Under the pieces are notes generated by a model that saw nothing but the letters and a program-made list of their open reading frames with translations, was not told where the DNA came from and ran no database searches. A program made the position numbers and the translations under genes. DNA of 64,000 nt, taken from contig CM068779.1 in NCBI GenBank assembly GCA_035084275.1, forward strand, positions 310,001-374,000. Reading direction: 5' to 3'. Positions 1,336-63,420 of this stretch are shown piece by piece. Origin of the DNA: Hydrolagus colliei. Its lineage: Eukaryota. Positions within the stretch are counted from its first letter, which is position 1. The number at the start of each line of letters is the position of its first letter.

Positions 1336-1519
1336 TAAAATAAAAATATTAATTTGGTAACTCAATCCACATCGCTTTGTTAGACAAAGAGGACTGTGAG
1401 ACACGGAGGACTGTGTGTGTCACTCTCTGACTGTGATTGGATCTCACACTATAAAGAGGACTTTTGTCTCTCTCTGTATGTATGTGACCCTCAGTAATGC
1501 AAAATACACGAAGAGCCAG

Positions 1520-2580
1520 ACAGACAGAGGCCTGTATGAGACAGAGAGAGAGAGAGAGAGACTTCTCTACAGATAGTCTCACACATACTCTCATAGAGAC
1601 ACAGGCCTGACACAAACACATCGAGACACACACACACAGTCCCCTGTCTCTTTCTCTGTCGCTCTCTCTCTGACACACAGGGAGAGGGAGACACACATAC
1701 ACATACAGGCCTCTGTCACACACAACTAGACTTATACACACTCACAACAACACTTCAATTCCCCCCAACCATCCAACAAACACATAAAAAAACACACACA
1801 TAGGGAGAGACACACACACACAGGGAGAGACACACACACAGGGAGAGACACACACACACACACACACAGGGAGACACACACACATACACAGGGAGACACA
1901 CACACAGGGACACACACACAGAGAGAGAGACACACACACACACAGGGAGACACACATACACACAGGGAGACACACGTACACACAGGGAGAGATACACACA
2001 GAGAGAGACATATACACACACACAGGGAGACACACATACACACAGGGAGAGACACACACACACATACAGAGACATACACACACGCACACAGGGAGACACA
2101 CATACACACAGGGAGAAACGTAAACACACACAGGGAGACACACACACACACACACACACACACAGGGAGAAACACACACACACACAGGGAGAAACGTAAA
2201 CACACACAGGGAGACACACACAGGGAGACACACACACACACACACACAGGGAGACACACAGGGAGAGACACAGACACACATACACACAGCGAGAGACACA
2301 GACACACAGGCAGACACACATACACACAGGGAGACACACACACACACAGGCAGACACACATACACACAGAGACACACACACACACAGGGAGACACACACA
2401 CACACACATGTAGACGCACACACACACAGGGAGAGACACACAAACAGACACACAGGCCTCTGTCTCTCTCTCTCGTTGTGAGTGTATCTCTGACCAGATC
2501 TTCCTCTCTCTCTCTCCCACCTTCTCTCTGTGTATCGCAGGATGTAACCACCCTCTCTCTCTCTCTCCCCCTGAGCATCT
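1520..2580. repeat. Compound (CA)n/(GA)n low-complexity tract
   Basis: Reiterated CACACACAGGGAGA(GA) units. This tract explains the Cys/Val-rich spurious ORFs. Confidence 0.95.
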
Positions 2581-2619
2581 GTGTCCCTGTATCTCAGGCT
2601 GTACACAGGCAACCAGTGG

Positions 2620-2710
2620 TAACCAGTGATTGACAGGAGAGTGAGAGGGAGACGCCCCCCGTTTCCCTAATAACCAGTCATTGACAGGAGAGAGAGAGAG
2701 ACCCGCCCAC
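2620..2710. promoter_or_regulatory. Candidate DAP3 promoter: duplicated TGATTGACAG (PBX-PREP type) motif plus GC box
   Basis: TGATTGACAG at 2627-2636 and TCATTGACAG at 2678-2687 lie in a 51-bp-spaced direct repeat, with CCCGCCC at 2702-2708. The site is upstream of DAP3. The non-coding first exon was not located. Confidence 0.35.
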
Positions 2711-3069
2711 TGGCTGTCACTGGATTGTTTTTAATAAAATCTTAACATTGTTTGGTATTTGGCTTTTTTCCAATTTAGATTTTTTAAATTATTTTAAAAT
2801 CATTTTAAAAATTATTTTTAGTTGTTTTGTATTTCTTTTTTCCCCCTCCAATTAATGAATGAATTACTTATTATTTCTTATCTAATAATGATTTCAGTAT
2901 TATGTAATTATTTGTTGTATGTGGGGTTGTTATTAGACGTGTGGAGATGGAAACCTGCCCAAGCTGCACCCTGTCTGGAATTGAACCCAGTTCTCTGGCT
3001 TGTGAGGCGATTGCTTCAAACACTGAGCTACAGGACTGCACCAACATACACCTTATAACTGTATGTAGG

Positions 3070-3900
3070 TTTGTCTGTGTGTGTGTGTGGGGGGGGGGCT
3101 GTGTGTGTGGGGGTACTATATACGTGTGTGTGTGTGGGGGGGGTGTATGTCTGCGTGAGGGGCTTTATGTGTGTGGAGGGGCTGAGTGGATGTCTGTGGG
3201 AATGGCGAGCTGTATGTAGGGGGGGTGGGTGTCAGTATGAGGGGCCCGTATGTGGAGGGTGTGGCTGTGTTTCTGTGCGGGGGCTGTATATGTGTGGGGG
3301 CTGTGTCTCTGGGTGTGAGAGGCGGGAGCTGAGTGTGTGTGTCTACCCCCGTTTCTGTGCGTATGTTTCTAGCCTCCCTCTCTCTGAACGTGTGTGTCTC
3401 TCTCTCATTCTGTATGTGTATATCCCCCCACTCTCTCTATATATCTGTGTGAGTGTCTTCCCCCCCTCCCTATGTCTGCGTGTCTCCCACACCACCCTCT
3501 ATCCCTCTCTCTATATGAGTGTGTGTGTCTTGCTCCATATGTATGTATGTCTTCACCTTCTCTATATATGTCTGTATATATGGGTGTCTCCCCTCTCTCT
3601 GTATATGTGTGCCTCTCCCTCTCTCTATGTGATTTATTGCCCCTTCTCTCCCTGCATGTGTGTGTGTGCACCATCCCCCTCTCTGTATGTATGTGTGTCT
3701 ATACCTCTCTCTCTGTATGTGCGTGTCTCCCCCTCTCTCTGTGCATATGCGTGTCTCCCCTCTCTTTGAGTATGTTTCTCGCCCCCATCTCTATATGTCT
3801 ATGTGTCTCTCTCCCTGTATGTGTGTCTCCCTCCTCTCTCTATGTTCTTATGTGTGTGTGTCATCCACACTCTCTCTGTATAAGTGTGTTTCTCTCCCCT
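3070..3900. repeat. (GT)n/(CT)n low-complexity tract
   Basis: Degenerate GT, GGG and CT dinucleotide runs. Confidence 0.9.
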
Positions 3901-3904
3901 CTCC

Positions 3905-5092
3905 CTGAGGTCCTACCTCTCCCATCGTCTTCACTTTGTCGCCGTCAATGGCATTTCCACTAGCCCCCGCACTGTCTCGTGCGGCGTCCCTCAGGGCTCT
4001 GTCTTCGGTCCCCTCCTCTTCACCCTCTATATGCTCCCCCTTGGTGACATTATCCGCAGACATGGGGTTAACTTCCACATGTATGCGGTTGACACCCAAC
4101 TCTACCTCCTCTTTTACCCTCAACTCCAGTACCACCGATATCCTGACAGCCTGCTTGTCTGACATCGAGTGCTTGACGCGAGATACCTTTCTTCAGCTCA
4201 ACCTGCGCAAAACTGAGGCCCTCCTGATTGGCTAGCGTCAGCGCCTCCGCACCTCAGGCGCTGAAAGCATCAGCATCCAAGGCTGGAGTCTCCACCTCAC
4301 TAAGCCAATCAGGAACCTCGGTTTTGTGTTTGACCCTGAGCTCTCCTTTCTTCGACACATCCGCGTGAGGAACAACTGGCAAAGCCTTTCACTACCTCCC
4401 GAATATTGCCAGGCTCCGGCACTGCCTCACCCCTCACGCTGCCGAAACCCTGGTCCACGCCTTTATCACCTCAAGTCTGGACTATGGGAACTCTCTCCTC
4501 GGCGGCCTTCCGGGCACCTCCCTCCACAAGCTGCAGGTCACTCAGAACTCTGCAGCTCATGTACTGACCCGCACCAGGCTTCGGGACCACATCACCCCCA
4601 CCCTCGCTCACCTCCACTGCGCTCCCTATCTCCCAGAGGATCGAATTCAAGATCCTCATCCTTACCTTCAAGGCGATTCATGGCCTTACTCCCTCCTACC
4701 TCTGCGAACTTCTATCCCCCTACTTCCCCACCCTTACACTCCGTTCCTCTGGCTCCGGTCTCCTCCACGCCCCCAGCCCTAACCACCCCACCATTGGTGG
4801 TCGGGCCTTCAGCCTCTCGGCACCTAGGCTATGGAACTCCATTCCTCAGTGCCTTCGTCTCGTTTCCTCCCTTTCCTCCTTCAAGGCCGGTCTGACGACC
4901 TTTCTCTTCAATGGTGCCTTCGGCTCCCCCTCTCGACTCTGTGCCCCCTCCTCGCTCCCTCCCTCCCTTCCCTTCCCTCACCCTGACCACTTCCCCCCTG
5001 CTCGGGTCCCGACCCAGCTGTTGAGCGCCTTGGGAATTCCTCCCGACGTGAAAGGCGCTCTATAAGTGCAATCTTGTTGTTGTTATTGTTGA
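3905..5092 (+). mobile_element. L2 LINE 3' portion (RT C-half), frameshifted
   Basis: Motifs [51 protein letters not shown] and FDPELSF are present, followed by an L2-type tail and (GTT)n. Confidence 0.9.
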
Positions 5093-16132: not shown

Positions 16133-17945
16133 CTAATTAAATAATTCAGCAATTAGTATAAAAGGAAATCTCACCGATCTCTTAATCTCTTCTCTGAATG
16201 AGTCTGGGTAACAGCGTAAATGCATGTGGTTTTACAGGAGCTTAAAAGCCGCCTATTAATTTGAAGGACGTCCCAATGGCTGGGATCATTGTAGCCTGAG
16301 AAGTAATTTGACACTGAAATTCTCCAGTATATGAAAAATAAAACATACGTCATCCACAACACTATAAAATTGCCTGATATCGCAATAAGTAAAACAATGG
16401 CTTTCCTTCGGCTCTTCATTTCTGGATCACTATCTCTCTCACCTCTATTCTTGTCCACATCACTGTGTCCCCGCCATCTCCTGCGGGCTCGACTGGCCTC
16501 CAGGAAGTGCCTGACAATCAGGGCGTTGAGCAGCAAAATCACAACGAATGGGAGAATCGGGGTTAAAATTGTGTCGATGAGGTCATACACTATCCATGGG
16601 AGAAACGAGTAAAAGTTTGCTATAGTAACACATCCCATCGGTACACTGTTAAGAATGATCTGTGGTTCATCGGAAAAATACCAAGGAATGCTTTCCCCAA
16701 AGAAGAACACATTCAGCCCCGCTATTACTGCAGCAGCTGTTTTTTCGGTGCAATATTTAGTTTTCAGTTGTTGGCAGCAGACGGCGACATGATATCGATC
16801 AAGGTGAAAGCTACAGTTAGCCAGACAGAGATTGCCGATGCTGCACCACTCACTACAGCTAGCAGCGCGCAAACAGGAGTGATGTTCACGAATGAATATG
16901 GGAAGTAGTAACGAACAATGCGAAAGAAAATCACCGTGAAAATTACCACCATCAGATCAGCCACTGACATGGCCACTAGATAGTGAGAGACACATTTGGA
17001 CCGCACCTCCCTCGGGACAGTATCAGAATGGCCGCGAGGTTAGCTACAGAGAGAGTGAGGGGAAAATGACCAGTTATAATAATCCATTTCTACAGTTGAT
17101 TTTCTGCTGATAAAGTGTATATCTTGTGCTGGACTTTCTGTTGTGTTGTATTCGCTTCTCTCACATTCAGTCACTATTTTGCGGAATCAACGGGAGATGG
17201 AGAAAAGTCTGGCTCGCTGCTCATCACCAGGTAACACAATCACACACACATACAGAGACAGACAGAGATCCACAGAGAGAGGGAGATGTGCTGACATGTA
17301 GAGAGGGGAAACAGAGCAATAAACAAATAGGTGACTCACAGGACTATATAGAGTAAAACAGATTCAGTCAGAAAGGCACCAACACGTTTTGTTTAATCGG
17401 CAGAAAGATCTATACCCGTTCAGAGAGAGAGACAGTCACAGACATAGAGGAACTGGAAGATGCAGAGATACAACTACACAGAGCGTTGTACACAGACACA
17501 TTGAGAGAGGCACAGAGCTACAATGAGACAAATAAATAATTTTTAGGTTACATCATAAAAAAAATAACAGAATTCCATCGCGTTCACAACAATTATTTTC
17601 TCTATTCAATGCCGCCCTTCTATCTTTAATACCTAAGCAGGCAAACTGGAGATGTCTTATTAAAACTTTATTCTCGCTACCGCACTTAGTTGAGAAATCA
17701 CGTCCTCGCAATATATTTGAACGTCATCGGTCAGTTATCCGAAAAAGGGCAATGGGGAATTTCAAGGTTTACACAAACCATTATTTGCTGATTGCAAAGG
17801 TGAGATTGCTAAACTGAGTGAGGCTAGAAAATTCACTGCAAACTAACCTAAATAATGAATTGATAAATCACTTGCCAGGAATACCAACAGCAGCGAGAAT
17901 CGGGTAGTAATTTTTTTCTGTTCTGTATATCATCGGATAGGCCAT
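16133..17945 (-). pseudogene. GPR139/GPR142-like class A GPCR pseudogene, copy 1 (exon 1 17945-17876; exon 2 17043-16133)
   Basis: Exon 1 encodes MAYPMIYRTEKNYYPILAAVGIP. Exon 2 contains ANLAAILILSRG..YLVAMSVADL..DRY..CCQQLKTKYCTEKTAA..DPEMKSRRKAIVLL..CIYAVTQ. At least three frameshifts: a 4-nt deletion near 17000, a 1-nt deletion near 16800, and one near the C-terminus. Confidence 0.85.
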
Positions 17946-21110: not shown

Positions 21111-22726
21111 CTAATGAAATAACTTAACAATTAGTATAAAAGGAAATGTCACTCCTCTCTTAATCTCCTCTCTGAATTGAGTCTGTGTAACAGCGTAAAT
21201 ACACGTGTTAGTACAGGAGCTTAAAAGGTGCCGCATGTAAGCAGATTGCTGAATAATGTTCCAAGGATCATTATCGCCTGAGAAATAATTTGCCCCTGAA
21301 ATTCTCTGGTATAAGAAAAATAAAACATATGTCATCCATAACACTGTAAAATTGCCTGATATCGCAAAGTGTAAAACAATGGCTTTCCTTCGGCTCTTCA
21401 TCTCGGGATCACTGTCTCTCTCATCTCTATTCCTGTCCGCATCACTGTGACCCCGCAATCTCCTGAGGTCTTGACTGGCCATCAGGATGTGCCTGACAGT
21501 CAGGGCATTGAGCAGCAAAATCACAACGAATGGGAGAGTCGGGGTTAAAATAGTGTTGAGGAGGTCATACACTGTCCATAGGATAAGTGAGAAAAAGCTT
21601 GCTTTAGTTTTACATCTCCACGGTATATTATTATATATGAACCGTGCACCAACGAATATGGGAATTCATAACCAACAATGCGATAGAAAATCACCGAGAG
21701 AATTACCACCATCAGATCAGTCACTGACATGGCCACCAGATAGACACATTTGGAGAGACCGCACCTCCCCCGAGACAGGATCACAATGGCCACGAGGTTA
21801 GCTACAAGAGAGAGAGAGAGAGAGAGAGAAATGACCAGGTATGATAATCAATTTTTACAGTTGATTTTGTGCTGATAAAATATATATTTTGTGTTGGAAG
21901 TTCCTGTTGGGTAATATTCGCTTCTCTCACATCAAGTCACTATTTTGCGGAATCAAAGGGAGATGGAGTAAAGTCTGGCTCTTTTCCCATCACCAAGTAA
22001 CACAGTCACACACACACACACATACAGAGACAGACAGAGATTCGCAGACAGAGGGAGATGCACTGACATGCAGAGAGGGAAATGTAGCACGAAACAAAGA
22101 AGGGACACACAGGACGATGTAGAGAAAAAATACATTCAGTCAGTAAGGCACAAATACCCTTTTTTTAATCAGCAGAAAGATCTATAACCGTTCAGAGAGA
22201 GACAGTCACAGACGTAGAGGGAATGGAAGATACAGAGATACAACTACACAGCGAGTGATCCACAGACACAATGAGAGAGGCACAGAGATACATGAGACAA
22301 ATAGAAAATTATTATACTGCATCATAAAAAACAATTACATAATCAATATGCCATCGGATTCATCTGATCTATTTTGAATGGTGCCCTACAATCTCTAATA
22401 CCTAAGCAGGGAAACTGGAGGTTTCTTCCTAAGCTTTTATTCTCGCTGTGCACATCCATGTGAGGATGTGATAAGAAATCACATCCTCACAATTTATTTG
22501 ATCGTCAGTGGTCAGTATCCCGGAATAGGGCAAAAGGGAATTTCAAGGATTACACAAACCACCATTTGCTGATTGAAAGGTGAGATTGCTAAACTGAGTC
22601 AGACTACAAACTTTACTGCAAACTAACCTAAATAATGAATTGGATAAATCACTTGCCAGGAGTTCCAACAGCAGCGAGAATCGGGTAGTAAATTTTTCCT
22701 ATTGTCCCAATTATCGGATAGGCCAT
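21111..22726 (-). pseudogene. GPR139/GPR142-like GPCR pseudogene, copy 2 (exon 1 22726-22657; exon 2 21801-21111)
   Basis: Paralog of copy 1: MAYPIIGTIGKIYYPILAAVGTP | ANLVAIVILSRGRCGLSKC... The TM3-TM4 segment (including the DRY motif) is deleted near 21650, with a frameshift. The C-terminal half is open. Confidence 0.85.
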
Positions 22727-23392
22727 CTTCACGGAGACAAAATGAATCCCCTTCTACAAAATGCAGCTCACGCAAAAAGAGTGCTTCTCAAGAGCATAAA
22801 ACTGGGTATTATTTAAATGAAAGTGGGGAACGCTCCATCGAGCAATTTTACCGAATGAAACTTGGGGAGTTTGAGCCGTGTGCAAACAAAAACATTATCT
22901 CCCTGAGTTACGCAATTCACCCCAATGATGTAATTTGGGGGCAGCTGGGTGTCCATTCCATGATGAAACCCAGGCCCACAACTCCACACACGCCACCGTG
23001 TGTCAGTGCAATGTTGTTCATAATTAACGAAACCATCAGAGAGATGCACATGTGTGTGTGTGTCCCACACCTACACACAGTATTCACCAGCCTGGAGTGT
23101 GTGTGTACATTGTCTACACAGGGGCCACTCACTAGCATTGAACCCACTACCTACTGCATTGGTCACAGCTTGGGAGGGACAAAGGCCTTTGTGACCACAG
23201 TGTATACAGGGCGCTGAGGTCACTGCTGTAGTTTAACCCGTAAATGGTGAAACGCTTTCCACAAAGGATAATGCTGCCATACAATTCCAATATACTGCCT
23301 TACATTGTATACACCTGGCTGTGAAATGCTAGTCAGCCACAAAGGAATAAAATATTCATGGGTTAAATGTATTCCTCGGTGTATATGTGTGT

Positions 23393-25735
23393 CTATCTAG
23401 TTTTGGGAAATGAGGTAGGGCAAGTTCAACAGGTTTCTGTAGGTGAGCATCTAGGGAATAGTGACCACAATATCGTTAGATTCAGAATAATTATGGAAAG
23501 GGATAAGGAACGATCACAGGTGAGGACACTCAACTGGAAAAGGGCTAATTTCAATGAGTTGAGGTGGGACCTAGCCAAGGTGGATTGGAAAGAAAAATTG
23601 GCAGGTAAGACAACTAACGAGCAGTGGGCAGCGTTCAAAGAGGAGATAGTTCAGGCACAGGTCAAAAGCATCCCCACAAAGGTGAAATGTAAGGCATCCA
23701 AACCTCCCTGGATGACTAAGGAAATCGGGGCCAAAATCAAACAAAAAAAAGAGGCTTATGATAAGTGTCAGGCTCAAAATTCAGAAGGGAACCAAGCAGA
23801 ATATAGGAAGTGTAGGATAGAACTAAAAAAGGAAGTTAGAGGGGCAAAGAGACTGCATGAAAAACAATTAGCGAGTAAGATTAAGGGGAACCCTAAGGTT
23901 TTTTACCAACATATTAAGAGTAAAAGGTTGGTCAAGGAGAGGGTGGGGCCAATTAGGGACCTAGGAGGAAATCTCATTGTGGAGGCAGAGGGCATGGCTG
24001 ATGTACTGAATGAGTACTTCGCCTCTGTCTTCACAAAAGAAAATGATACAGCCAATGCCATGGTATTAGAGGAGAGGGTAGGAGAAATGGATAGAATAAT
24101 TATAACCAGAGAGGAAGTGCTAACAAGGTTGACGTCGCTCAAGGTGGATAAGTCACCTGGTCCGGATGGGATGCACCCTAGGTTACTAAGTGAGGCACGG
24201 GAGCAAATAGCAGGGACTCTGGCCACGATCTTTCAATCTTCCTTGGACACAGGGGTCGTGCCAGAGGACTGGAGGATAGCTAATGTTACTCCCTTGTATA
24301 AAAAGGGGCAGAAGGACAAGCCTGGTAACTACAGACCAGTCAGTCTAACGTCGATAGTGGGCAAACTTCTAGAGTCCATAATCAGGGACAAGGTAGATCT
24401 TCACTTAGAAAGATATAGGCTAATAAAGGACAGTCAACATGGATTTGTTAAAGGCAAATCTTGCCTTACAAATCTGATAGAATTTTTTGATGAGGTAACG
24501 GAATGGGTGGATAACGGTAGCGCAGTTGATGTAGTTTACATGGACTTTCAAAAGGCATTTGACAAAGTGCCACATGAGAGACCTATTATGAAATTAAAGG
24601 CCCATGGCGTAAAAGGGACAGTGGCAGCGTGGATCCACAACTGGCTGCGAGACAGAAAGCAGAGTGTTGTAGTGAGCGGCTGTTTTTCAGATTGGAGGGA
24701 AGTGAGCAGTGGTGTGCCACAGGGATCGGTTTTGGGACCATTGCTGTTTGTAATCTACATCAATGATCTGGACTTGGGTGTACGGAGTACAGTTTCCAAG
24801 TTTGCAGATGACACTAAGTTAGGGAGAATAGTAAACAGTGAGGAGGATAGTAGCTATCTGCAAGAGGATATAGACAAATTGGTAAAGTGGGCAGACACAT
24901 GGCAGATGAAGTTTAATGCAGAGAAGTGTGATGTGATGCATTTTGGGAGAAGAAATGAAGGGAGGCAATATAGGCTAGATAGTACAATTTTAAATGGTGT
25001 GAAGGAACAGAGAGACCTGGGGATTTGTGTTAGTGACTCGTTGAAGGTGGCAGGACAGGTAGACAAGGCTGTTAAGAAGGCATATGGGATACTAAGCTTT
25101 ATAAATAGGGGTATAGAGTACAAAAGTCAGGAAGTGCTGACTAACCTCTATAGGACTTTGGTGAGGCCTCAGCTGGAATACTGTGTTCAATTCTGGTCAC
25201 CACACTACAGAAAGGATGTGAAGGCATTGGAAAGGGTACAACGAAGATTTACTAGGATGGTGCCAGGATTGAGGGACTTCAGCTATGAGGAGAGGCTAGA
25301 TAGGCTAGGGTTATTCTCTCTGGAGCAGAGAAGATTGAGGGGAGACCTAATAGAGGTTTATAAGATCATGAGGGGTTTCGACAGGGCAAATAGAGAAAAA
25401 CTATTTCCACTCGTGGGTGAATCTGTGACTCGTGGTCACAGATTTAAAATAGTTTCAAGGCGCAGTAGAGGGGAGCTGAGGAGAAATTTTTTCACTCAGC
25501 GAGTTGTTCGAATCTGGAATGCATTGCCTGAAAAGGTGGTGGAGGCTGATTCGATAACAACTTTTAAAAGGGAATTAGATCTTTATATAGGGAGAACGGG
25601 TCTATTAGGCTATGGGGAGCGGGCAGGGCAATGGGATTGAATCGCTCTTTTCAAAGAGCCGGCACAGACTAGATGGGCCGAATGGCCTCCTTTTGTGCCG
25701 TAAAATTCTATGATTCTATGATTCTATGATTCTAT
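23393..25735 (+). mobile_element. CR1 LINE, 5'-truncated, with an uninterrupted ORF2 RT region (ORF 23367-25640)
   Basis: RT motifs NYRPVSLTS, DFQKAFDKV, GVPQGSVLGP and FADDTKL. The 3' end has the GGCCGAATGGCC stem-loop and an (ATTCTATG)n tail. Most of the endonuclease domain is absent. Confidence 0.95.
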
Positions 25736-28960: not shown

Positions 28961-31011
28961 ATTGAATACTCGATTACAAGTAATAGTTTGGCCATATATT
29001 CCCGTGGCTTCTCGTCTCAGCAGTCGAGCTTCATAAATACTTTCAGGGATTTAACCCTTAGCCTTATGACGTGCTCTGCTCTGGTATCGTAAGCCATCAC
29101 TTAAATTGATCCTGTACATTCGAAATGAAATTGCAATTTGCCATGGGACTTCTGGATCAAATCAAGAGCCTACACGTCATGTAAGTTATTGACTAGATGA
29201 AGCTACATCGCATCAACACGGAAATCAGTGGAATTCTTCTGTATATCTACAGATCAGCATTCATGTCTTCCACGCCAGCTGCATTGCCATGAGCCATGCT
29301 ATACCCAATCACCAGCATACCCTAAGACGCCATCGGCCTTACCACAAGCCAGGCCAGGCCTCCACAGCACAACTGCTTCCCTAGCAATAACCAAAACATG
29401 AATACCCCTGAACAATTATTTCTTGTTCATGATTGGAATGAGGCTAATTGCCAACCTATCGTGAAATTATTTTCTGTTGAGCCCTGCAGCTCGGTGACTT
29501 TGGTTCTAAGAATATTCGTTTGGATGTCACTTCATTAAACGATCCAATGCAATCCACGAGAATGGATTCATAAAGTCGTCAATTTTTATTGTCAGTGACG
29601 ATGTGGCGAGTGGAATACTTATATCAACTTGGTTTTGTGAAACGTGGAACTGCGGACACTACAGAGGATTGTGTAGGACAATCAATAAAAAACCGTGACA
29701 GAAGCGTGGGTAGGATTTTCAAGGGAGTTTATCACAAAAAAACAATGGCATGAACAGACAATCACATAAAAATAATGTGCGATTGTAAAATGAATTTTCG
29801 ATGAGAGGATGAACAATGGCGCTGGCAATTCAGGGATTTGCACGTTGTATGGTGTTCAGATCGAAAGAGGTGGAGGCTGAGGGAGAATAGTGCAGTTAGT
29901 CTTGTCAGAGTAATATGACGAGGAGATGGGTCAAGCAAACGCTTTCAAATAGACCACGGATTATTGGTACTGTTACGGCCGATTTGAATCAACGAAATGT
30001 CAAGAAATTCTCCAAAGCTCAGGTGCCGATATCAGGTGCTGATATCACGTGCTCCTAATTCTTATATTCTTATGTTCTTATATCATCACCCTTCACAGAT
30101 ACATTCACTCCACACATTACGGAGAAAATATGGCATCTCGGAATCCTAATCATCCATCAAATGTATGGACTATTATGGGATGGATTATTGTTATTAGGCA
30201 TGGGGAGTAAGGACACTTGCTCAAGATGTTGCCCTGATCTTCCTGGATTCGAACACAGATCTCACGTTTGTTAAACGAATGCTCTAACCACTGAGCTACA
30301 GGAGCTCTCACTATTAAACCTAGCATTCTAGGGTTGTGGTAAGGCATGATTACACCATCGAGACGTCTGAAAGCGCTTCACTAATATATTGTAAATTGAA
30401 TTTCTTGTAGTTTGTGGACAAAGCATGGCAGCAAATTGCAGAAATCAGTATCTCAGACACATCCTGGGATTGAGTGATCAAATTATATTTATTTATTTCA
30501 CTGGAATTAATTATCCTGGAAAAGTGTTGCCCTAGTCGACTAACTTGTAACTGTCTGCTGGTAAACAGAGGCGTGTGGAACAAGGAAATCTCCACAGCTT
30601 TTCACGTTTCGGAGAATCAAGCTCAGGTCTCTCGCTTGTGAGGTATATACTCTAATTGCTGAACAAGTCCACTTCACTGCAGAGTTGTGGAAAATGACTA
30701 TTGCAAATACCCAAATAATTAGAAAAATTATAATAACAATGATACTGGAGTTAGATAGTGTACCTTCCCCATCAGGAGGACGTCCAAAAGTGCTTTACTT
30801 TATTTAACGGTAAGTGGAGTGAAGGTTAACACGAAAGCCCAATTGCTTACAGGAATATCCCACAAAAGTTCAGACAGTCAATAACAAATTTTACATGGCT
30901 GATTGTGGGACAGGAATCTGGGTTAAATTCTCGATCAGCAATAGGGGGTATTTAATCTCCACCTGACCTGACCAAATGAGCTCGTTCGATACACAACGTA
31001 ACAATAGGTAA

Positions 31012-31379
31012 ATATTACCCACAATTGTAGCGTTGCCATTTCAGACCGTCCGCCATAGTTAATTAAACATGTGTGGCCTCCATTATAGTCACCCTCGCTT
31101 CTTCTATTCTGAGAGACACATCGCCCTGTATCAACCCATCTAACAACAAGTACGTTCTGCCTGTGTGGGATTCATCCTGATCTTCTGTTTGGTAACGTCC
31201 ATCAATGTATAAGTTCAGGGGCGATTCAAACTTGTTCCTGAACCTTCTGATCTCCAACACCCTCCTACCTCCCCCCCCCTCACTGACGTGACAGGGATAT
31301 CGAACACTTACAGTCCAGCACCACTTCTGTACCAGCTCTGGCTGTGATCGGGTAAGCAGCGCCACTCACATTAATATCT
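31012..31379 (-). pseudogene. Butyrophilin/B7-family IgV exon remnant
   Basis: Frame-corrected translation is DINVSGAAYPITARAGTEVVLDCKCS..VLEIRRFRNKFESPLNLYIDGRYQTEDQDESHTGRTYLLLDGLIQGDVSLRIEEARV..NGGHTCLINYGGRSEMATLQLWV, matching the BTN/MOG-type V signature (LY.DG....Q...Y.GRT.L..D....G.VSLRI). A CAG acceptor precedes 31379. There are about 3 frameshifts, and the C-strand Trp is lost. Confidence 0.8.
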
Positions 31380-31604
31380 CTGCTTCAATGACAAACAATG
31401 GGTACGGTTAACATGGCCAGAAACACATTGACAATATACAGTCACTGAGATGCGATCGAGGTGCATGCTTTGAGGTTGAGGATATTTGGCGTGAAGCAAT
31501 TCCATTCCCCCTGATGTTTGTGAAAACTGCCAAATATCACTGCCGTCTTCATAAATCCCTACATCCCTACAATCAATAAACTGTTCTCAATTGAACAATT
31601 ACCT

Positions 31605-31790
31605 GGAGCTCCTGTGGCTCATTGGTTAGAGCACTTGTCTTGTAAGCTGGGGAGACCAAGCTGGGGAGACCTGTGTTCGAATCCAAACAGGTCAGGGCGA
31701 AATCTTTGGCAAGACTATTGTGTGCAGTTTTGGTCTCCTTACTTAATATAGGACATACTTGCCTTAGTATGCAGCGTAGATTCACTAGGT
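31605..31790 (+). mobile_element. tRNA-derived SINE 5' part
   Basis: GGAGCTCCTGTGGCTCATTGGTTAGAGC...GTTCGAATCC head with an internal GCTGGGGAGACC duplication. Confidence 0.8.
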
Positions 31791-32235
31791 TAGTTCATGG
31801 GATGAGGCGACTGACCTATGAGGATAGGTTGAATAGACTAGGGCTGTAATCTCTAAAGTGTAGAAGAATTAAGGGGTATCTTGTTGAAACATATAAGATT
31901 CTTAAAGGGCGGGATAAAGTAGACATTGAGGGACTGTTTCCCCTGGTAGGAGAATCTATAACCAGGGGTCATATCTTAAAATTATGGGTCAGCCTTTTAG
32001 AACAGAGTTGAGGAAACATTTCTTCTCCCAAAGAGTAGTGAATATATGTAATTCACTACCCCAGAAGTCTGTAGATGCTCAGTCCTTGAATAGTTTCAAA
32101 TCTGAGACTGATAGATTTTCAAAATATATAGGGATTAGAGGATATAGAGATAGGTCAGCAGATCAGCCACGATCTTATCAAATGGTGGGGCAGGCTCGAG
32201 GGGCCGAAAGGCCTACTCCTGCTCCTATTTCTTCT
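31785..32235 (+). mobile_element. CR1 LINE 3' fragment (different subfamily)
   Basis: FRTELRKHFFSQRVVNICNSLP motif plus a GGCCGAAAGGCC terminal stem. Confidence 0.8.
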
Positions 32236-32912
32236 GTTCTTATCTTACTTACTCCACACGCCTAATAATAATCCGTCCAAAAAAAAACAGAATAATAAAA
32301 TTGGTCATTTCAATTCACGACTGTTTGTGAATTGAAGTAGCAGTTGGCTACCGCGATTCCCCCACAAATATATACAGTCAATTCACTTCATATTATATTC
32401 AGTGAAGCGCTCTGGGACGTCGATAAATTAGGAAAAGCGCTATATCAAATGCAAGCATTATTATTATAATCTTCTACCATTGAGAAAATAAACTGCTATT
32501 TCTAGAGTAATCATAATCATTGCATTTGATACAGCGCTCTTCACGTCTTCTAGACTGTGCCTCAAAGCGCTTCTCAAAAAACTACTGCTACGTGAATTGA
32601 CTATAAACACGAGAGCGAAACATGGGACTATATTGCACACAGCAGTGTCAAGCAAACTGTCGTGGATTCAAGTTACCAAATTATGATGTTTATTTGAGAG
32701 ATTATTATCAGATATATAGAGTAAGAAATCTTGCCCAAGGTTTCGCCTGGAGTCAATCCAGATATTTTGCGTGCGAGGCGAGGGATCTAACCATTGGCAA
32801 TGTCGCTCAAACTCACAAGGAAGCGAGCGATAAATTATATTTGATTTGGAGGTTATTGGCCTGCAAAATGCAGTAATCGTCCTCCTATACATTTCACATA
32901 TTACCATATGTT

Positions 32913-33048
32913 NNNNNNNNNNNNNNNNNNNNNNNNNNNNNNNNNNNNNNNNNNNNNNNNNNNNNNNNNNNNNNNNNNNNNNNNNNNNNNNNNNNNNNNN
33001 NNNNNNNNNNNNNNNNNNNNNNNNNNNNNNNNNNNNNNNNNNNNNNNN
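32913..33048. other. Assembly gap (136 N)
   Basis: Run of N. Confidence 1.
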
Positions 33049-37269: not shown

Positions 37270-39524
<2,255 letters not shown>

Positions 39525-48900: not shown

Positions 48901-51900
48901 GGAGCAAGGAAACTTGCCCCAGGATTCGCCCTCATCTGGCTGGATTAGAAAACCGGTCTCACGCTTGTAAAACGAGAGCTTCAGATACTGAGCCACAGGG
49001 CTCACGGGTAATGAAAAGTATCCAACGTTTCACCCTGACATGGCCGGTAAACGAACCTGTGTCCTCTCATGGCGAGCGCTCTAACTACTGATCTTCAGGG
49101 ACGAACTAATCTAGTTAGTAGCTAACTAATCTGTAAATTCACCGTTTTTCCTTTTTTCTTGGTACGTCACGCTCTTCTCCACTGTTTTCTCTGGAGACAC
49201 TTGAGCAACACAAGTGCACATGGCACCTTCGATCCAGGTGTCATTTGAGATGTGGATCTGACTCCTCACACTGTATGTTCCATCAGGTTGGTGCGTCCCT
49301 TGATCACTCGCTCCCGCCGTTAATTGTCCTGACACATTCCAGAACACGGGAACCATATTGGAGGACACTCGGCTGACCAAACACACCAAGGGAACCGACT
49401 CAACGGAATCCAGGCGAAACCGAGGCACGAATATTTGCAAGGACGTCTTGTCTGAGGAAGTCTCTGAAGTGGGAAACAGACAAGAGGAGGCAATAGTTTG
49501 TACCGACTCAATATTACTGCTACTTGGGACAGTGAGAAAGCTGGAGTCCTGAAATCCTGTAATTCAGTAGATAGAGCACTTATTGTACAAGCCTGAGACC
49601 AGTTTGCGAATCTAGCCAGATCAGGGCGAATCTTTGGGCAAGTTTCCTTATTTTACACGCGTAATAATGTGCCGTCAAAAAAAGTTGGTGGTTTCAATTC
49701 ACATCTGTTTGTGGGACACTGCTGTGTGCAATTGGCTGCCTTGTTTCGCATACAAATATGCAGTCAACTAACCTTACAGCACATACTGTGAAGCACTTTG
49801 AGATGCCTAGAAGAACGGAAAAGCGCATATCAAAACCAAAGATTACTATTCTTACGTATTATTAAATCTTGCAAATAGCTCTCTCACTAGCAGAAACTTA
49901 CTCTTGTAGGAATGTTTCTCAGGCACTGGAAAGAGTGCAGAGGAGATTTACTAGGACGGTACCAGGAATCAGGGACTTCCGCTATGAGGAAAGGCTACAG
50001 AAGCTAGGTTTATTCTAATTAGAACCAATAATATTGCGTAGAGACCTACTAGAGATTTTTAAGATGATGAGGGGATTCGATAGAGGAAATAGAGAAAAAC
50101 TGTTTCCACTGATGAGAATATCAGTGAATCGTGGTCACAGATTCAAAATAGTTTCAAAAAGAAGCAGAGGGCAGGTTAGGAAAAATAAATTCTCCCGGCG
50201 TGTTGTTCGAATCTGGAATGCATTGCCTGAAAAGGTGGTGAAGGCCGATTCTATAAAAGTTTTTTTAAGAGAGGTAGATGTTTATTTGGGAAAGATGGTT
50301 TGCGAGATTATGGGCAGAGAGCTGTGGAATAGGATTAAATCGCTCTTTTGAAGGAGCCGACTCGATTCGATAGGCCGAATGGCCTCCTTTTGTCCAGTAA
50401 GATTCTCTGATTCTCTAGCGGCCATATGCCAGGAAGGCGCACCAGAGCGCTATACAGACAATGGTGTCTGGACTTGAGTTGGGAGTTGGAGTCAGCAGGA
50501 TTATGAAGCAGGCACATTGTGTGTGAGAGCGTGGCTGAATGAGCAGTCAAATCGAAGGTTTTTAGAAGGAGTAGAGGGGGCCCATAGCAGTATTGAGGCC
50601 GTGGGCTTGTAGCCAATATCTCAAAAGCCACACTGAGTGGGTTCAGCATTTATCCCATCACACACAGAGGGGTTCTCCACTCCGCCCTCTCTCAACAAAC
50701 CTTTGATCTCGCCAACCTGGGCTTAATACACGATTGAATTAGGCGAGCATTCTGCCTCCCTCCAGAGAGTGTGTATCTTGATCAATCAATAAACCAATGA
50801 GGAATACACCCATGAGTAAGTGGAACGCGTCAGATCACAAAAAAAATTCATTCTTACCTCCGACAAGTAGAGTGGATGCGTTCAATAGAAAGTCGATATA
50901 TTGCTCAGAGCAATAGTATGAGCCAGAATCATTCCTCTGTACATCACGGATTTTCAGTTTTAAAGCTCCGTTGACTGTTTCAGAAGCAAATTTACAAGAT
51001 GACCCTTTGCAGGATTGAGTGTCGATTAGCTGTGGGGCTTCGCCATCAGTTTGTTTGTACCAAACAGTTTCAATCTCATATCTTGTGTTGCATTGTACCT
51101 CAATATCCTCGCCAACCTTGACCAAACAGAGATAGGGGAACAGCGACGCGAGAGGTTCAGATTCTGAATGGGAAACAAAGACGTTTAATTGAAGTTAGAG
51201 TTTAATGAAAGAAACAATAACAGTACGAAATTATACTTACATAGCGCCTGACATTCGTGTGGGTAGGACAACACAACGTACTGGGATTATCAGTGTCTGC
51301 ACCCGAGCTGGGGGATTAGATAGGAGGGTGCCCGAAGGCACGGTTGAGGAGGAGGATCTTGGGACACCACTTGAAATAGCAAAGGGAGAATGCGAAACAA
51401 AAGGTATGCGTGATGAAGTTCCAAATGGTCGGGGCAGAGTGGCTGAAGCCCTGATTGTCAATAGTGGGGCGAGGGAGGCAGGACACATGAAGTAGACAGC
51501 AATAATTTTATTTTGCCTAAAGCTCCCCATTGTAGCGTCCAAGAGCGCATACAACAAACTAATGTACATCAAGCCAGACAAAAAATCGTATTGTCACTAC
51601 ACTTTACAACGTATCCTGTGAAACGTTGTGAGACTTCTCGAAGATGTGATCAGCGGTCTTTTCAAATTATTATTACTATTACTATTATTATCATCATTAT
51701 CATCATTATCATCATTATCATCATCATCATCATTATCATCATTATCATTATCATTAATATCTCTGCTCTTACCATTTTATGTTGAAATATCAAATTTGAT
51801 CCGCTTTGAAAATACAAAAAAATGTAATTGAGTAGAATTCAGTCCTTATTTTTTTTGCCAAACTTGCGAAAGAAAACTGTGTAAATTATTTGCATCTGTA

Positions 51901-53744: not shown

Positions 53745-56575
53745 ATCTAGTTAGAAATGAGGAATACAAAAGGTGCAGCTACACTGTTAGTGGTATACTA
53801 TAGACCACCAAATAGTGGGGAGGAGATAGACAAGCAGATCTGCAAGCGTATCACGGAGAAATGCAGAGCTAATAGAGTAGTGATAATGGGTGACTTCAAC
53901 TATCCCAACATAGACTGGCAGAATAGTAGTGCAAAGGGCAAGGAGGGAGAAGAATTCCTGAAGTGTGTGCAGGACAACTTTCTTGATCAATATGTTTCCA
54001 GTCCAACGCGGAAAGAAGCATTGCTGCATCTAGTTTGGGGAAATGAGGTAGGGCAAGTTCAACAGGTTTCTGTAGATGATCATCCAGGGAATAGTGACCA
54101 CAATATCGTTAGATTCAGAATAATTATGGAAAGGGATAAGGAACGATCACAGGTGAGGACACTCAACTGGAAAAGGGCTAATTTCAATGAGTTGAGGTGG
54201 GACCTAGCCAGGGTGGATTGGAAGGAAACATTCGCAGGTAAGACAAGTAACGAGCCGTGGGCAGTGTTGAAAGAGGAGATAGTTCAGGCACAGGTCAAAA
54301 GCATCCCCACAAAGGTGAATTGTAAGGCATCCAAAGCTCCCTGGATGACTAAGGAAATCGGGGCCAAAATAAATAAATAAATAAAAAGAGGCTTATGATA
54401 AGTGTCAGGCTCAAAATTCAGAAGGGAACCAAGCAGAATATAGGAAGTGTAGGAAAGAACTAACAAAGGAAGTTGGAGGGGCAAAGAGACTGCATGAGAA
54501 ACAATTACCGAGTAAGATTAAGGGGAAGCCTAAGATTGTTTACCAACATATTAAGAGTAAAAGGTTGGTCACGGATAGGGTGGGGCCAATTAGGGACCTA
54601 GGAGGAAATCTCATTGTGGAGGCAGAGGGCATGGCTGATGTACTGAATGAGTATTTCGCCTCTGTCTTCACAAAAGAAAAGGATACAGCCAATGCCATAG
54701 TATTGGAGGAGAGGGTAGGAGAAATTGATAGAATAATTATAACCAGAGAGGAAGTTCTGAAAAGGGTGACGTCGCTCAAGGCGGTTAAGTCACCTGGTCC
54801 GGATGGGATGCACCCTAGGTTACTAATGGAGGCACGGGAGCAAATAGCAGAGACTCTGGCCACAATCTTTCAATCTTCCTTGGACACAGGGGTCGTGCCA
54901 GTGGACTGGAGGATAGCTAATGTTACTCCCTTGTATAAAAAGGGGCAGAAGGACAAGCCTGGTAAATACAGACTAGTCAGTCTAACGTCGGTAGCGCGCA
55001 AACTTCCAGAGCCCATAATCAGGGACAAGATAGATCTTCACTTAGAAAGATATAGGCTAATAAAGGACAGTCAACATGGATTTGTTGAAGGCAAATCTTG
55101 CCTTACAAATCTGATAGAATTTTTTGATGAGGTAACGGAATGGGTGGATAATGGTAGCGCAGTTGATGTAGTTTACGTGGACTTTCAAAAGGCATTTGAC
55201 AAAGTGCCACATGAGAGACTTATTAGGAAATTAAAGGCCCATGGCGTAAAAGGGACAGTGGCAGAGTGGATCCACAACTGGCTGCGAGACAGAAAGCAGA
55301 GAGTTGTAGTGAGCGGCTGTTTTTCAGACTGGAGGGAAGTGAGCAGTGGTGTGCCACAGGGATCGGTTTTGGGACGATTGCTGTTTGTAATCTACATCAA
55401 TGATCTAGACTTGGGTGTACGAAGTACAGTTTCCAAGTTTGCAGATGACACTAAGTTAGGGAGAATAGTAAATAGTGAGGAGGATAGTAGCCATCTGCAA
55501 GAGGATATAGACAAATTGGTGAAGTGGGCAGACACATGGCAGATGACGTTTAATGCAGAGAAGTGGGAGGTGATGCATTTGGGGAGAAGAAATGAAGGGA
55601 GGCAATATAGGCTAGATAGTACAATTTTAAATGGTGTGAAGGAACAGAGAGACCTGGTGATTTGTGTTAGTGACTCATGGAAGTTGGCAGGACAGGTAGA
55701 CAAGGCTGTTAAGAAGGCATATGGGATACTAGGCTTTATAAATAGGGGTATAGAGTACAAAAGTCAGGAAGTGCAGACTAAACTCTGTAAGACTTTGGTG
55801 AGGTCTCAGCTGGAATACTGTGTTCAATTCTGGTCGCCACACTACAGAAAGGGTGTGAAGACATTGGAAAGGGTACAAATAAGATTTACTAGGATGGTGC
55901 CAGGATTGAGGGACTTCAGCTATGAGGAGAGGCTAGATAGGCTAGGGTTATTCTCTCTGGAGTAGAGAAGATTGAGGGGAGACCTAATCGAGGATTATAA
56001 GATCATGAGGGGTTTCGACAGGGCAAATAGAGAAAAAGTATTTCCACTCGTGGGCGAATCTGTGACTCGTGGTCACAGATTTAAAATAGTTTCAAGGCGA
56101 AATAGAGGGGAGCTGAGGAGAAACGTTTTCACTCAGCGAGTTGTTCGAATCTGGAATGCATTGCCTGAAAAGGTGGTGGAGGCTGATTCGATAACAACTT
56201 TTAAAAGGGAATTATATCTTTATTTAGGGAGAACAGGTCTATTAGGCTATGGGGAGCGGGCAGGGCAGTGGGATTGAATCGCTCTTTTCAACGAGCCGGC
56301 ACAGACTAGATGGGCCGAATGGCCTCCTTTTGTGCCGTAAAATTCTATGATTCTATGATTCTATGATTCTATCACTTTGTGTGTATGTGTTTGTGTGTGT
56401 GTGTTATGTGTCTCCGTCTTTCTCCTTAACAACTGTGACTCTGTATCTGTCTCTAACTCTTTCTGTCTCTCTCTCTCTCTCCCCCTCTCTCTCATTTTGT
56501 GTGTCTGTTTATGGAGGCCGAATGGCCTCCTTTTGTGCCGTGGAATTCTATGAATCTATGAATCTATGAATCTAT
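53745..56575 (+). mobile_element. CR1 LINE (same family as the 23.4-kb copy), longer at the 5' end, inactivated, with a duplicated 3' terminus
   Basis: Endonuclease motifs YYRPPNS and MGDFNYP plus RT motifs. There is an (AAAT)n frameshift near 54370 and a TAG at 55963-55965. The first tail ends at 56372, followed by a 141-bp insert and a second terminal stem-loop and tail at 56514-56575. Confidence 0.95.
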
Positions 56576-57766
56576 ATGGTCTTTCAGTTCAGCATCAATG
56601 GCTGAGTACTACAAATAGATAACTAGGAACGATAATATTCATTGCATTCAACACAGACATGATCACACCTTCGATATATCGCAAAACACTTCACAGTAAA
56701 TACTGCAAAGCGAACTGACTAAGTATTTTGTGGGTGAAATGCGGCAGCCAATTGCGCACAATGAAGTCCCATAAATTGTCATGTGGTGATTAGCAAATTG
56801 ATATATTTTTATTGTTGCCATTGTCTGACTACAAGGAGTTTGACCACATTCAGACCACACTCGATGTCTCGTTAAATTGGTCACTGGCCTCGCTTCATAT
56901 CAATATCTCGCTCGCTGCTTGGAGGTGAGAGAGAAGAAAGTAATATGATTGGATGCCCTTTACAGACTACAGTGTGCAAGTGGGCGTTGAATACACAAAC
57001 AGGAAAACCACAAAAATATGTATTGCCTGAAACAATGTACTTCTGCTGATTCTCAAGTTATTAATAAACATGCGGTTTTCGAACCTTGCTCTGTACGTCA
57101 AAATTTCCAGCCGCCAAACTGACCATAACGGTATTGTTCTTAACGATCGGAAAGTTTTGATACAGTCACAAACAGCTCAGATCCACACAGACAAAATTAG
57201 GATCTTAATGATCCGTGCTTTCTCTCATCTTCTTCAAGTTTAGAATTTAATATTCTCATCAGATATGCCAGTCAAAATAATAATTGCAGCATTTTGTGTG
57301 GAGGAATCTCAATGCCATTTGATTGGTTTACTATACAATTTAGTGGATGTGTACTTTGTTGGCACACAACATCTATCCAAAGGACAGCAATGTACTGAAC
57401 AATGAATTTTATCTGGGGATAACAATAGTATTCCTTTCAGTTGACACAGCGCCTCATCCCATCTTCAAGACATCAAAAGGCGCTTCATTTTTAACCAATA
57501 TATACTGTCAAGTGGATTGAGTGTAAACGTGACAGCCCACAAAATATTTACAGTCAATTCACTTGATAGTATATTCTATGAAGTAGCTTTGAGTCGTCTC
57601 GAAGACATCATGATAAATATCGTTATTATTATAATCCGGGAAGTCGGTTGCCTTGGTTCAGAGGCATTATTAAAATGGCTTATTACTACTAACTGTTCAC
57701 AAACAATTTATTTCCTTGAATCAATGACTTGGCTGTAATCCGTCTCAATGTTTGACTTTGTGTCAG

Positions 57767-59463
57767 TTGTGGTACCGCGGATGGCTTTGGAGCAGACTCC
57801 AGCACTGCAGACATTGGCGGTAGGCAACACTGTGAAGATTGATTGTTACGGCAGCATGCACTCACTGAGCATTGCTGTTAGATGGTACACACAGAGACAC
57901 AATGGGAAGCTAGAAAGGTTCTACATAGTATCACAAACTTCTCCAAATGCTATACAGAAGGAGAATAAAACTGACCGTTATCATCATATTTTCATCATCG
58001 AAAATGCTCAGATAAAAGATTCTGGGACATATTACTGTTCTGCTAGGAATTATACAAGTGGAACCATTGTATTTGGGAATGGCTCCGAGGTCACAATTGC
58101 AGGTAAGTTTCACCATGCTTTTTTTATGCGTAAGAATCACAATAACCCTTTCATTGGCTTTAGCACCTGTTTGTGTCTTCAAGACATCTCACTGTACTTC
58201 ACATGATATTGTGAGTTGCCTGTATATTTAGCGAACGTGGCAGCCAATTGCGCACAGCAGTTTCCCACAAACCGAGTGACGAATTTATTATTATTATTAT
58301 TATTGTTATTGTTTTTGATTAAATTACTAACACTGGAGAAGCAATCCAAGAGAACTTGCCTGATATTTTGCCCTGACGGGAAGCGAACTCAGGTCCGCTC
58401 GCTTGTGAGGCAAACGTTTTCTGCATTGGACACAATCGGAATTTAAGAACCTAGAAAGAGAAGGAGAGTTTGCAGCTCCGTGAGCCTCCCTGGTTATTCT
58501 GCAAAATCGCGACTGAACCTATATATTCATTTCAATTACCTGCCTTTGCCACATCTCCCTTGATACCCTGACCTACAAAACATTTTTTCCACTCGAATCT
58601 TATCAATGGGAATGAATACGGCCATAATCCACAGTGTTTTGGGCACAGAGCTCCAGAGCCTGCAGCTACAGTATTCATCTTGCAAACTAGACGAACTGAG
58701 CTCACTTTCCAGCTGAAATTGTGCGTAAGTTTCCTTAGTCTGTTTACCAGCAGTAAGATCGTAAGCAGTTGTTAATCCATTGCTGGAATACGTTTTTCGA
58801 AGGTAGTATGCTCTCAAAAATCTAAAAGTAACAAAATGATCACTGAATGCACGATTGTTTGTTGCACACTCTGTGAGCAATTCAGTGCCACGATTCGCGC
58901 AGCAATACCCAGTCACTACGCGTATGGTGTGAATCATGTCAAGTGCATTGAGCCATTTACAGAGGAGACCAGGCTTTTTGTGAAACGCAAAGATTATTAT
59001 TAGTTCACTCCAAGTAGCTTAATGATCACTTATGCGGATCTGAGTGCGCTTTGTGCATGTCCTCCTGATGTGAAAAACAATAAGCAAATGTAATATCGTT
59101 GTTCTTGTGATGTGTTGACGTTGTCCTATTCAAATGATTGTGTTCTGTTCCCTGGTCTCAGCCGGTCCCCCCAGGATGTACATTTTATCTCCTCCATCGG
59201 ATGAGATCCTGTCAGTGGAGACAGTCCCATTGATATGTGTGGTCAGTGGAGTGCCCCAGCTTCCTCTCCCATCCACTGGACGCTGGCTGGACAACGTACG
59301 GAGGGCCTGACTGATTCGCGTATCACAGAACCAGATGGAACCTACAGCATCAGGAGTCAGATCAACATCTCAATGGAGATGTGGGAGAGCGGCGTTGGCT
59401 GCACTTGTATTCATCTCAACTCCACTGGACACACTGGAAATCAAACTGCATTATATCACACAG
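57767..59463 (+). CDS. IgSF receptor B: germline-joined VJ exon (57767-58102) plus C1 exon (59162-59463, -1 frameshift as assembled)
   Basis: V exon: ..LEQTPALQTLAVGNTVKIDC..AVRWYTQ..ENAQIKDSGTYYCSARNYTSGTIVFGNGSEVTIA|GTAAGT, 336 nt, phase 1-1. C1 exon: AGPPRMYILSPPSDE..VPLICVVSGV[fs]PASSPIHW..PDGTYSIRSQINIS..WESGVGCTC, 302 nt (303 needed). The leader and TM exons were not confidently found. Confidence 0.75.
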
Positions 59464-60134
59464 GTAACTAGCCACATGGCTATTCGACTGTCCAGCTCCT
59501 AGTTTTTCTTCTCTATCCGAAATTGTCAGTAGATAGAAGACCAGGGTCCATCCAATTCGCCTTTCACAACCCACATGAATTCCTGCAGCTCAGCGTTTGG
59601 AGCGCTAATCTCACAAACGAGACGAACCGGGTTCTACTCACGGGTGGGACAGTGTAGAATGCTGGGCAGGTTTCCTTACTGTGCACACATCTCTGTTTAC
59701 CGAGCAGCAAGACGAAATACGCTTGTTAGTCGATTTGTGGTCTACTTTGCCGGGGGTAATATTCCTTTGAAAATAATTTTATTTCAAAATGATTCAGTCA
59801 CTCAGTCCATTACTTTATTATACACATGAATTATATTGCTGTGTATAATAAGATGCCACATTTTGCCCACAAAATATTCGGTCACCACGTGTTACTGGGA
59901 AGTGTATTTAAACGATAATAACCTACATGTATCCAGCGCTCATTATACAGGTTAGAGAACCAGAAGGCTAATCAATATCTTGTCAACCTTCTCTGCTCTC
60001 AGAAGAACAATCCGAGCCTTTTTCCTTTCTCTGCATAATCTATATCGGGTTTGAGTCAATGGATTGTGCTGTCCAAGCCCGATGACTGAAGCCATTTGAG
60101 CAGTCTTGTCCATGTGCAGTCACTGCCTCAATTC

Positions 60135-63100: not shown

Positions 63101-63420
63101 TTGGATGGTGGTAGGGAGGGAGGGAGCTGGCGAGGGAGAGAGGGGGGTAGAGAGTGAAGGTTAGTGGAAGGGAGGGAGGAAGGGAGGGAGCGATGGAGGG
63201 AGAGAGGGAAGGAGGTGGGTTTGGATGGTGGGAGGGAGGGAGGAAGGGAATGAAGGACTGAGGGATGGAGGGAAGGCGTGCCAGGGATGAAGGGAGGGAG
63301 TGAGGGAGGTAGGGAGGGAGGGAGTGAGCGTGGGATGGAGCGAAGGTGGGCGGGAGAGAGTGAGAGAAGGAGGGACGGAGGGAGGGAGGGAGAGGCATGG
63401 GTTGGGATGGTGGAAGTGAG
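60135..63420. repeat. 3.3-kb polypurine (GGA/GGGA) tract with higher-order duplication
   Basis: The plus strand is overwhelmingly G and A. About 60335-61118 is repeated near-identically 1495 bp downstream, and GGGTTGGGATGGTGGAAGGG sub-units recur. Confidence 0.95.

Follow-up and report, generated by a model that had tools for sequence, protein, structure and literature searches.

Butyrophilin-like genes in Callorhinchus milii and in mammals

Butyrophilin-like genes are already annotated in Callorhinchus milii, where RefSeq names XP_042201173.1 (protein P0132 in our set) 'butyrophilin subfamily 1 member A1-like' and P0138 'BTN2A2-like'; P0139 is a further member. The locus of P0132 is called L001 below and that of P0139, a gene with V, C, TM and B30.2 exons, L002. 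These C. milii genes are intact across V, C and TM, with or without B30.2, and their C exon lies 0.5-0.8 kb downstream of the V exon. Proteins P0138 to P0142 combine V-set, C2-set_3, PRY and SPRY domains, so the closest intact relatives of the exon described here have butyrophilin (BTN) architecture. No detailed treatment of the BTN-architecture genes of C. milii was found in the open-access literature searched. Among mammals, the IgV domains that can be likened to our exon are those of BTNL8 (PDB 22kk), SKINT1 (2n4i), MOG (1py9), BTN2A1 (8dfw) and BTN3A1 (4f80).

The window, that is, the whole 64,000-nt stretch of Hydrolagus colliei DNA analysed here, contains one broken copy of the first Ig (V) exon of a butyrophilin-like gene. 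Gene duplication has left it behind as an ordinary pseudogene fragment. Very probably this IgV exon, which stands alone and no longer functions, belongs to the butyrophilin-like family of chimaeras and arose as a by-product of birth-and-death duplication where BTN-like genes and TRIM/B30.2 genes share a cluster.

31012 to 31379, minus strand: BTN-like IgV pseudo-exon, from DNA alignments to the C. milii L001 and L002 V exons

The pseudo-exon has in common with the C. milii family the V signature VVLDCKCS...EGVE-IRWFR...GRT...GDVSLRL...VTDNG-YTC, as well as the same phase-1 acceptor context and a homologous flanking intron. In contrast to the intact C. milii genes, the window copy is a V exon alone, with frameshifts and stops. 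With the mammalian BTN/BTNL/SKINT/MOG domains it shares the V-set fold type and the pattern that runs from 'E-[VI]-RWFR' through 'Y.GRT.L' to 'G.vSLRI', but only about 30-45% identity.

V relics are common in the butyrophilin-like family, since each of the two C. milii loci examined, L001 and L002, has a broken V copy as well. In the L001 copy (30726-31095, minus strand) 2 nt are deleted, five bases away from the 1-nt deletion of the window copy; the L001 copy has kept its C exon, whereas the window copy has none. The one in L002 (19512-19650, plus strand) is a 5' V fragment, 77% identical to the 5' end of the window exon. The C. milii copies adjoin B30.2 exons, and their lesions are independent of those of the window copy.

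Identification of the V pseudo-exon

The minus strand between 30950 and 31450 was read in three frames, and the three pieces of V domain found in this way were searched separately, with no stop read through.

31286 to 31372, minus strand: piece 1, strands A-B with the first Cys (31312-31310), NVSGAAYPITARAGTEVVLDCKCSISLSR; profile E 1.9e-10
31087 to 31266, minus strand: piece 2, strands C to E, RRVLEIRRFRNKFESPLNLYIDGRYQTEDQDESHTGRTYLLLDGLIQGDVSLRIEEARVT, with RRVLEIRRFRNKF...GDVSLRIEEARVT; profile E 1.9e-15
31013 to 31090, minus strand: piece 3, strands F-G with the second Cys, DYNGGHTCLINYGGRSEMATLQLWVI; profile E 0.0044

The E-values are those of a family profile (A2) made from seven C. milii V domains and run over the whole window in six frames, cut into 3123 stop-to-stop segments. 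The three pieces were matches 1, 2 and 4 of this search, and the profile matched them collinearly (profile positions 4-32, 32-91 and 75-116 for pieces 1, 2 and 3). Piece 2 alone, compared with the PDB by phmmer, found BTNL8 (7e-8), SKINT1 (3e-6), CD276 (2e-5) and MOG (5e-5), with further matches to BTNL3, BTN2A1 and BTN3A. The BTNL8 match provides the significant V-set similarity that an earlier, sequence-only reading of this DNA had set as its own test. Piece 2 sits within a 100-aa ORF (31063-31365, minus strand), for which 131 proteins at E<=1e-3 were found among 1.84 billion representative proteins (best 1.8e-20), those of highest identity all coming from C. milii. Piece 1 is 58-62% identical to C. 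milii proteins, and its VVLDCKCSISLS is identical to P0045 at 12 of 12 residues; piece 3 is 46-48% identical to P0132 and P0133. Searched alone against the PDB, pieces 1 and 3 gave weak light-chain V matches (E about 0.2) or none. None of the three separate pieces matched the Pfam V-set model, because separately they are too short. The Ig V-set core (PF07686) is not contained in one open frame: both Cys are kept, while the frame is broken three times and there are two stops.

At the DNA level the pseudo-exon is 70% identical to the intact V exons of L001 and L002. In alignments with these exons it starts at 31379, next to an acceptor AG at 31381-31380, and its last homologous base is 31012; the coordinates proposed by the sequence-only reading are those of the homologous exon exactly. 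Its identification of a decayed BTN/MOG-type IgV exon is borne out by the matches of the pieces, by the family profile and by the DNA homology, and the motif string that it gave is spelled by the three minus-strand pieces. Its placing of the DNA in a cartilaginous fish also agrees with our data, given that the closest V relatives are all from C. milii and that introns and SINEs align to that species at the DNA level.

Flanking introns, missing exons and origin

The exon is embedded in recognizable intron sequence on both sides, with repeats and a gap around it.

31380 to 31435, minus strand: 3' end of the upstream intron with the acceptor AG, conserved with C. milii paralogues (blastn and the four-sequence alignment A3)
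30349 to 31011, minus strand: remnant of the V-to-C intron, aligning to C. milii L001 20678-21380
30187 to 30307, unstranded: SINE copy with a tRNA-like head, where the intact-gene homology stops (self-blastn to window copies)
31605 to 32442, plus strand: SINE (31605-31711 and 32245-32442) split by a LINE 3' fragment (31713-32160) (blastn and tblastn with the window's own copies)
32508 to 32747: further SINE upstream of the V exon
32913 to 33048, unstranded: assembly gap of 136 N

Window positions 31435-30349 align to L001 20253-21380 by blastn with 63.6% identity over 1158 nt (E 3e-101). The homologous segment is made up of the upstream-intron end (a conserved stretch of ~55 nt), the V exon and ~700 nt of the next intron. 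Beyond 30349, which falls within a SINE, the intact gene can no longer be aligned, and the window copy lacks C, TM and B30.2 exons. The head of this SINE matches the Rfam tRNA model (30235-30305, minus strand, 34.8 bits), and ARAGORN found no tRNA within 29-34 kb of the window. In gene orientation, 230 nt separate the split SINE from the V exon that follows it. Both the 136-N gap and the SINE insertions had been pointed out as flanking features beforehand, and they are present as described; the LINE fragment would be the putative CR1 insertion of that reading. A leader exon could lie in the gap or elsewhere upstream of the V exon.

The partner exons were searched for in two ways. When 11 relatives were compared with the window by tblastn, only noise was obtained at E<5 for IgC, TM and B30.2 exons on the minus strand, and when the complete C. 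milii gene was compared by blastn at low stringency, its C and TM exons had no match in the window. Across the 31 kb of minus strand downstream of the V exon no C, TM or B30.2 exon was found. The membrane-proximal IgC exon typical of butyrophilins is absent from the blastn matches, as nothing in the window matched the L001 C exon. The TM exon of P0132 (L001 24423-24551) had no window match either, a result weaker than that for IgC since short hydrophobic exons are hard to detect. The sole B30.2 exon of the window (38991-39524) is on the plus strand and belongs to a TRIM gene. These searches agree with the sequence-only reading, in which C, TM and B30.2 exons had not been seen on the minus strand either. 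Its wording of a decayed BTN-like gene holds for the decay and not for the gene: since the V exon is the only one present, the locus is a fragment rather than a complete decayed gene.

As to how the fragment arose, the duplication may have been partial, or a SINE-associated rearrangement may have removed the remaining exons of a V-bearing gene. Afterwards the solitary V exon would have drifted neutrally, accumulating indels and stops and losing a splice site.

Chicken immunoglobulin genes are diversified by pseudo-V segments through gene conversion, and it can be asked whether intact BTN-like V exons make similar use of the relic, either as a source of converted sequence or as a non-coding element that is transcribed, so that it has been kept. 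A multi-copy family with several broken V copies would offer the setting for such a role, and the upstream intron end and the acceptor are well conserved among paralogues. However, identity to the closest of the fetched exons is 70%, a level at which no conversion tract can be seen, and there is no intact partner gene within the window. We regard a retained role of this kind as very improbable.

Butyrophilin/MOG or another B7 lineage

The family label was evaluated by scoring single V domains with the C. milii profile. MOG reached 97-100 bits per V domain, BTN2A1 96, BTN1A1 92, BTNL8 84, SKINT1 77 and BTN3A 72-76, while VTCN1 scored 68, CD276 57-66 and PD-L1 53. Neither HHLA2 nor CD80/86 was found among the 60 profile matches listed. 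Pieces 1 and 2, entered as separate rows in a maximum-likelihood tree with CD276 as the sole B7 outgroup, both fell within the C. milii BTN-like clade with support 95/98. From the PDB matches of piece 2, the profile scores and this tree, the exon has the features of a butyrophilin-family N-terminal IgV domain. The comparison of sequences thus supports a BTN/MOG label over CD276, VTCN1 and PD-L1.

A V domain descended from a non-BTN B7 lineage (CD276, VTCN1, HHLA2 or PD-L1) would change this label, and the sequence-only reading had named such a grouping as what would speak against it. CD276 is indeed among the PDB matches of piece 2 and is first in the profile search by summed score. The latter rank arises because its chain has two V domains, and per single V domain BTN/MOG obtain 84-100 bits against 53-68 for the other B7 members. 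Moreover, the closest relatives carry PRY/SPRY, and the named top matches from other vertebrates are BTNL2, BTNL8, MOG-like and ERMAP. A non-BTN origin is therefore highly improbable; the single-domain scores favour BTN/MOG, and the tree agrees as far as a tree with CD276 as its only B7 outgroup can.

Lesions and probable loss of function

DNA alignments with the intact C. milii exons, mainly alignment A1 (the window exon and two C. milii V exons), revealed eight lesions in the pseudo-exon.

First ~12 nt of the exon, minus strand: 1 base missing (A3 and exon alignment)
31272 to 31292, minus strand: B-C loop insertion of 21 nt, G-rich, GTCACGTCAGTGAGGGGGGGG; neither the two C. milii V exons of A1 nor L002 have it
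31265 to 31267, minus strand: TAG stop where relatives have CCG/CCA (Pro) (A1)
31257, minus strand: 1-nt insertion directly after the EGV codons (A1 column 162; also in the L002 exon alignment)
31245 to 31243, minus strand: invariant C-strand Trp changed to Arg (AGG) (A1)
Between 31087 and 31086, minus strand: 1-nt deletion within the V-T-D-N-G codons (A1 column 333; also in the L002 exon alignment)
31075 to 31073, minus strand: F-strand Tyr/Phe of the Y/F-x-C motif changed to His (CAC) (piece 3)
31010 to 31011, minus strand: splice-donor site TT, where the C. milii family has G/GT (A1 columns 409-410)

Three of these are frame-changing 1-nt indels, corresponding to the count of about three frameshifts made from the sequence alone; the further lesions were not listed there. 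Because of the base missing near the exon start, piece 1 is read one position out of step with the phase-1 entry frame. The insertion at 31257 moves the frame into the 100-aa ORF, and the deletion at 31087/31086 moves it into piece 3. The 21-nt insertion includes a run of nine G (31279-31271) and an in-frame TGA (31282-31280). As for the properties of a working exon, the acceptor AG is kept, the change of GT to TT means that the donor is lost, and the exon has 368 nt where its intact C. milii counterpart has 348 nt, so that its length is no longer a multiple of 3 as that of a phase-1/phase-1 exon should be. A codon-position test for neutral drift did not set the window exon (p=0.33-0.46) apart from a pair of intact paralogues (p=0.19), neither showing an excess at third positions.

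Two other placements of the 5' half were tried and rejected. In the frame of the ORF, 'YPCHVS' can be taken for a B strand that mimics the mammalian 'LPCHLSP'; this required a 19-nt insertion, and it was rejected because the C. milii relatives read the piece 1 segment with 12 of 12 identities in the other frame. A first alignment had suggested a +1 insertion at the 5' end together with a lost acceptor, while the four-sequence alignment A3 shows a conserved acceptor and a 1-nt deficit.

Most likely, judging from these lesions, the exon makes no protein and does nothing. That the exon instead still works within an intact BTN-like gene, its frameshifts being assembly errors, is scarcely credible: one lesion does lie in or beside the 9-G homopolymer, a possible assembly-error site, and the assembly has gaps, but the run would account for at most one lesion, whereas there are eight independent ones, substitutions included (TAG, Trp to Arg, GT to TT), and no C or TM exon downstream of the V exon.

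Meaning of the relic

The sequence-only reading had connected this exon with the question of how gamma-delta T-cell ligands arose. Our results do not support this: intact full V-C-TM-PRY/SPRY genes are already annotated in C. milii, and since they carry RefSeq butyrophilin names the relic adds nothing to that question. As far as can be read from the DNA, no coding capacity is left in the V relic and nothing at the locus would bear on gamma-delta T cells. In itself the relic matters little: it adds another dead copy to a BTN-like/TRIM cluster whose evolution is one of gene duplication and loss. What it documents is a chimaera-lineage genome with V-exon relics beside intact BTN-architecture genes that have existing RefSeq names. 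For annotation, 31012-31379 is best labelled a pseudogene fragment and left out of BTN gene counts in comparisons on the origin of B7/BTN.

Neighbouring genes and repeats

Other genes of the window are disrupted as well, namely the RING exon of a TRIM gene and two 7TM genes. The TRIM gene, of the 'zinc-binding protein A33-like' type, is the source of the only B30.2 exon.

37342 to 39524, plus strand: TRIM gene
37342, plus strand: ATG from which the RING begins
37431 to 37772, plus strand: B-box
38030 to 38395, plus strand: coiled coil
38991 to 39524, plus strand: B30.2 exon

Its frame changes near 37456-37470, within the RING. The B30.2 exon has 79% DNA identity to the B30.2 exon of an intact C. 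milii BTN gene, and its top 33 relatives are all from C. milii (64-73% identity), with elasmobranch, coelacanth and lungfish sequences at or below 61%. The SINE and LINE families of the window and its non-coding flanks align to C. milii loci. Taken together with the nesting of the V pieces among the C. milii paralogues, these similarities mark the DNA as holocephalan.

Two further units, each consisting of an unsplit VJ-type V exon followed 1-1.4 kb downstream by a C1-set exon, are a more curious feature of the window than the V relic.

50860 to 51125, minus strand: unsplit VJ-type V exon
49126 to 49440, minus strand: C1-set exon
57748 to 58206, plus strand: unsplit VJ-type V exon
59119 to 59471, plus strand: C1-set exon, frameshifted and split over two frames

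One VJ-type V exon ends in ...YYCSEQYIDFLLNASTLLVG/gtaaga and the other in ...YYCSARNYTSGTIVFGNGSEVTIAG. In sequence these V exons are similar to the V domains of Ig light chains or of TCR-alpha, and the C exons are of generic Ig/TCR C1 type; a search for RSS near the two VJ exons found none. The units may be germline-joined light-chain clusters or relatives of UrIg/UrIg2, which are non-rearranging genes in elasmobranchs (PMC12227049, PMC10751288). A likeness of the C1 exon to UrIg2 was rejected as not specific, being a sum over three domains with per-domain E of 0.14-4. It is an unlikely reading that the relic marks a chimaera neighbourhood in which BTN-like V exons, TRIM/B30.2 and VJ-C1 units are mixed, the latter as holocephalan relatives of UrIg/UrIg2. 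If true, the elasmobranch UrIg/UrIg2 family of antigen-receptor precursors would extend to chimaeras and be linked to BTN and TRIM genes.

The remaining observations concern receptor genes and repeats. Two rhodopsin-type 7TM receptor genes lie in tandem at 16171-17006 and 21111-21793 (both minus strand), each spread over two overlapping frames, and both are probably pseudogenes. A non-LTR retrotransposon (RVT_1) is present in two young copies, at 23367-25640 and 53757-56277 (both plus strand), with about 86-88% protein identity; one of them has an open 757-aa ORF, and the C. milii loci contain copies with a DNA identity of about 73%. Long low-complexity tracts at 1349-3963 and 60279-63398 yield spurious long ORFs, either Cys/Val-rich, from TG/CA-type repeats, or Ser/Leu/Pro-rich on one strand and Gly/Arg/Glu-rich on the other.
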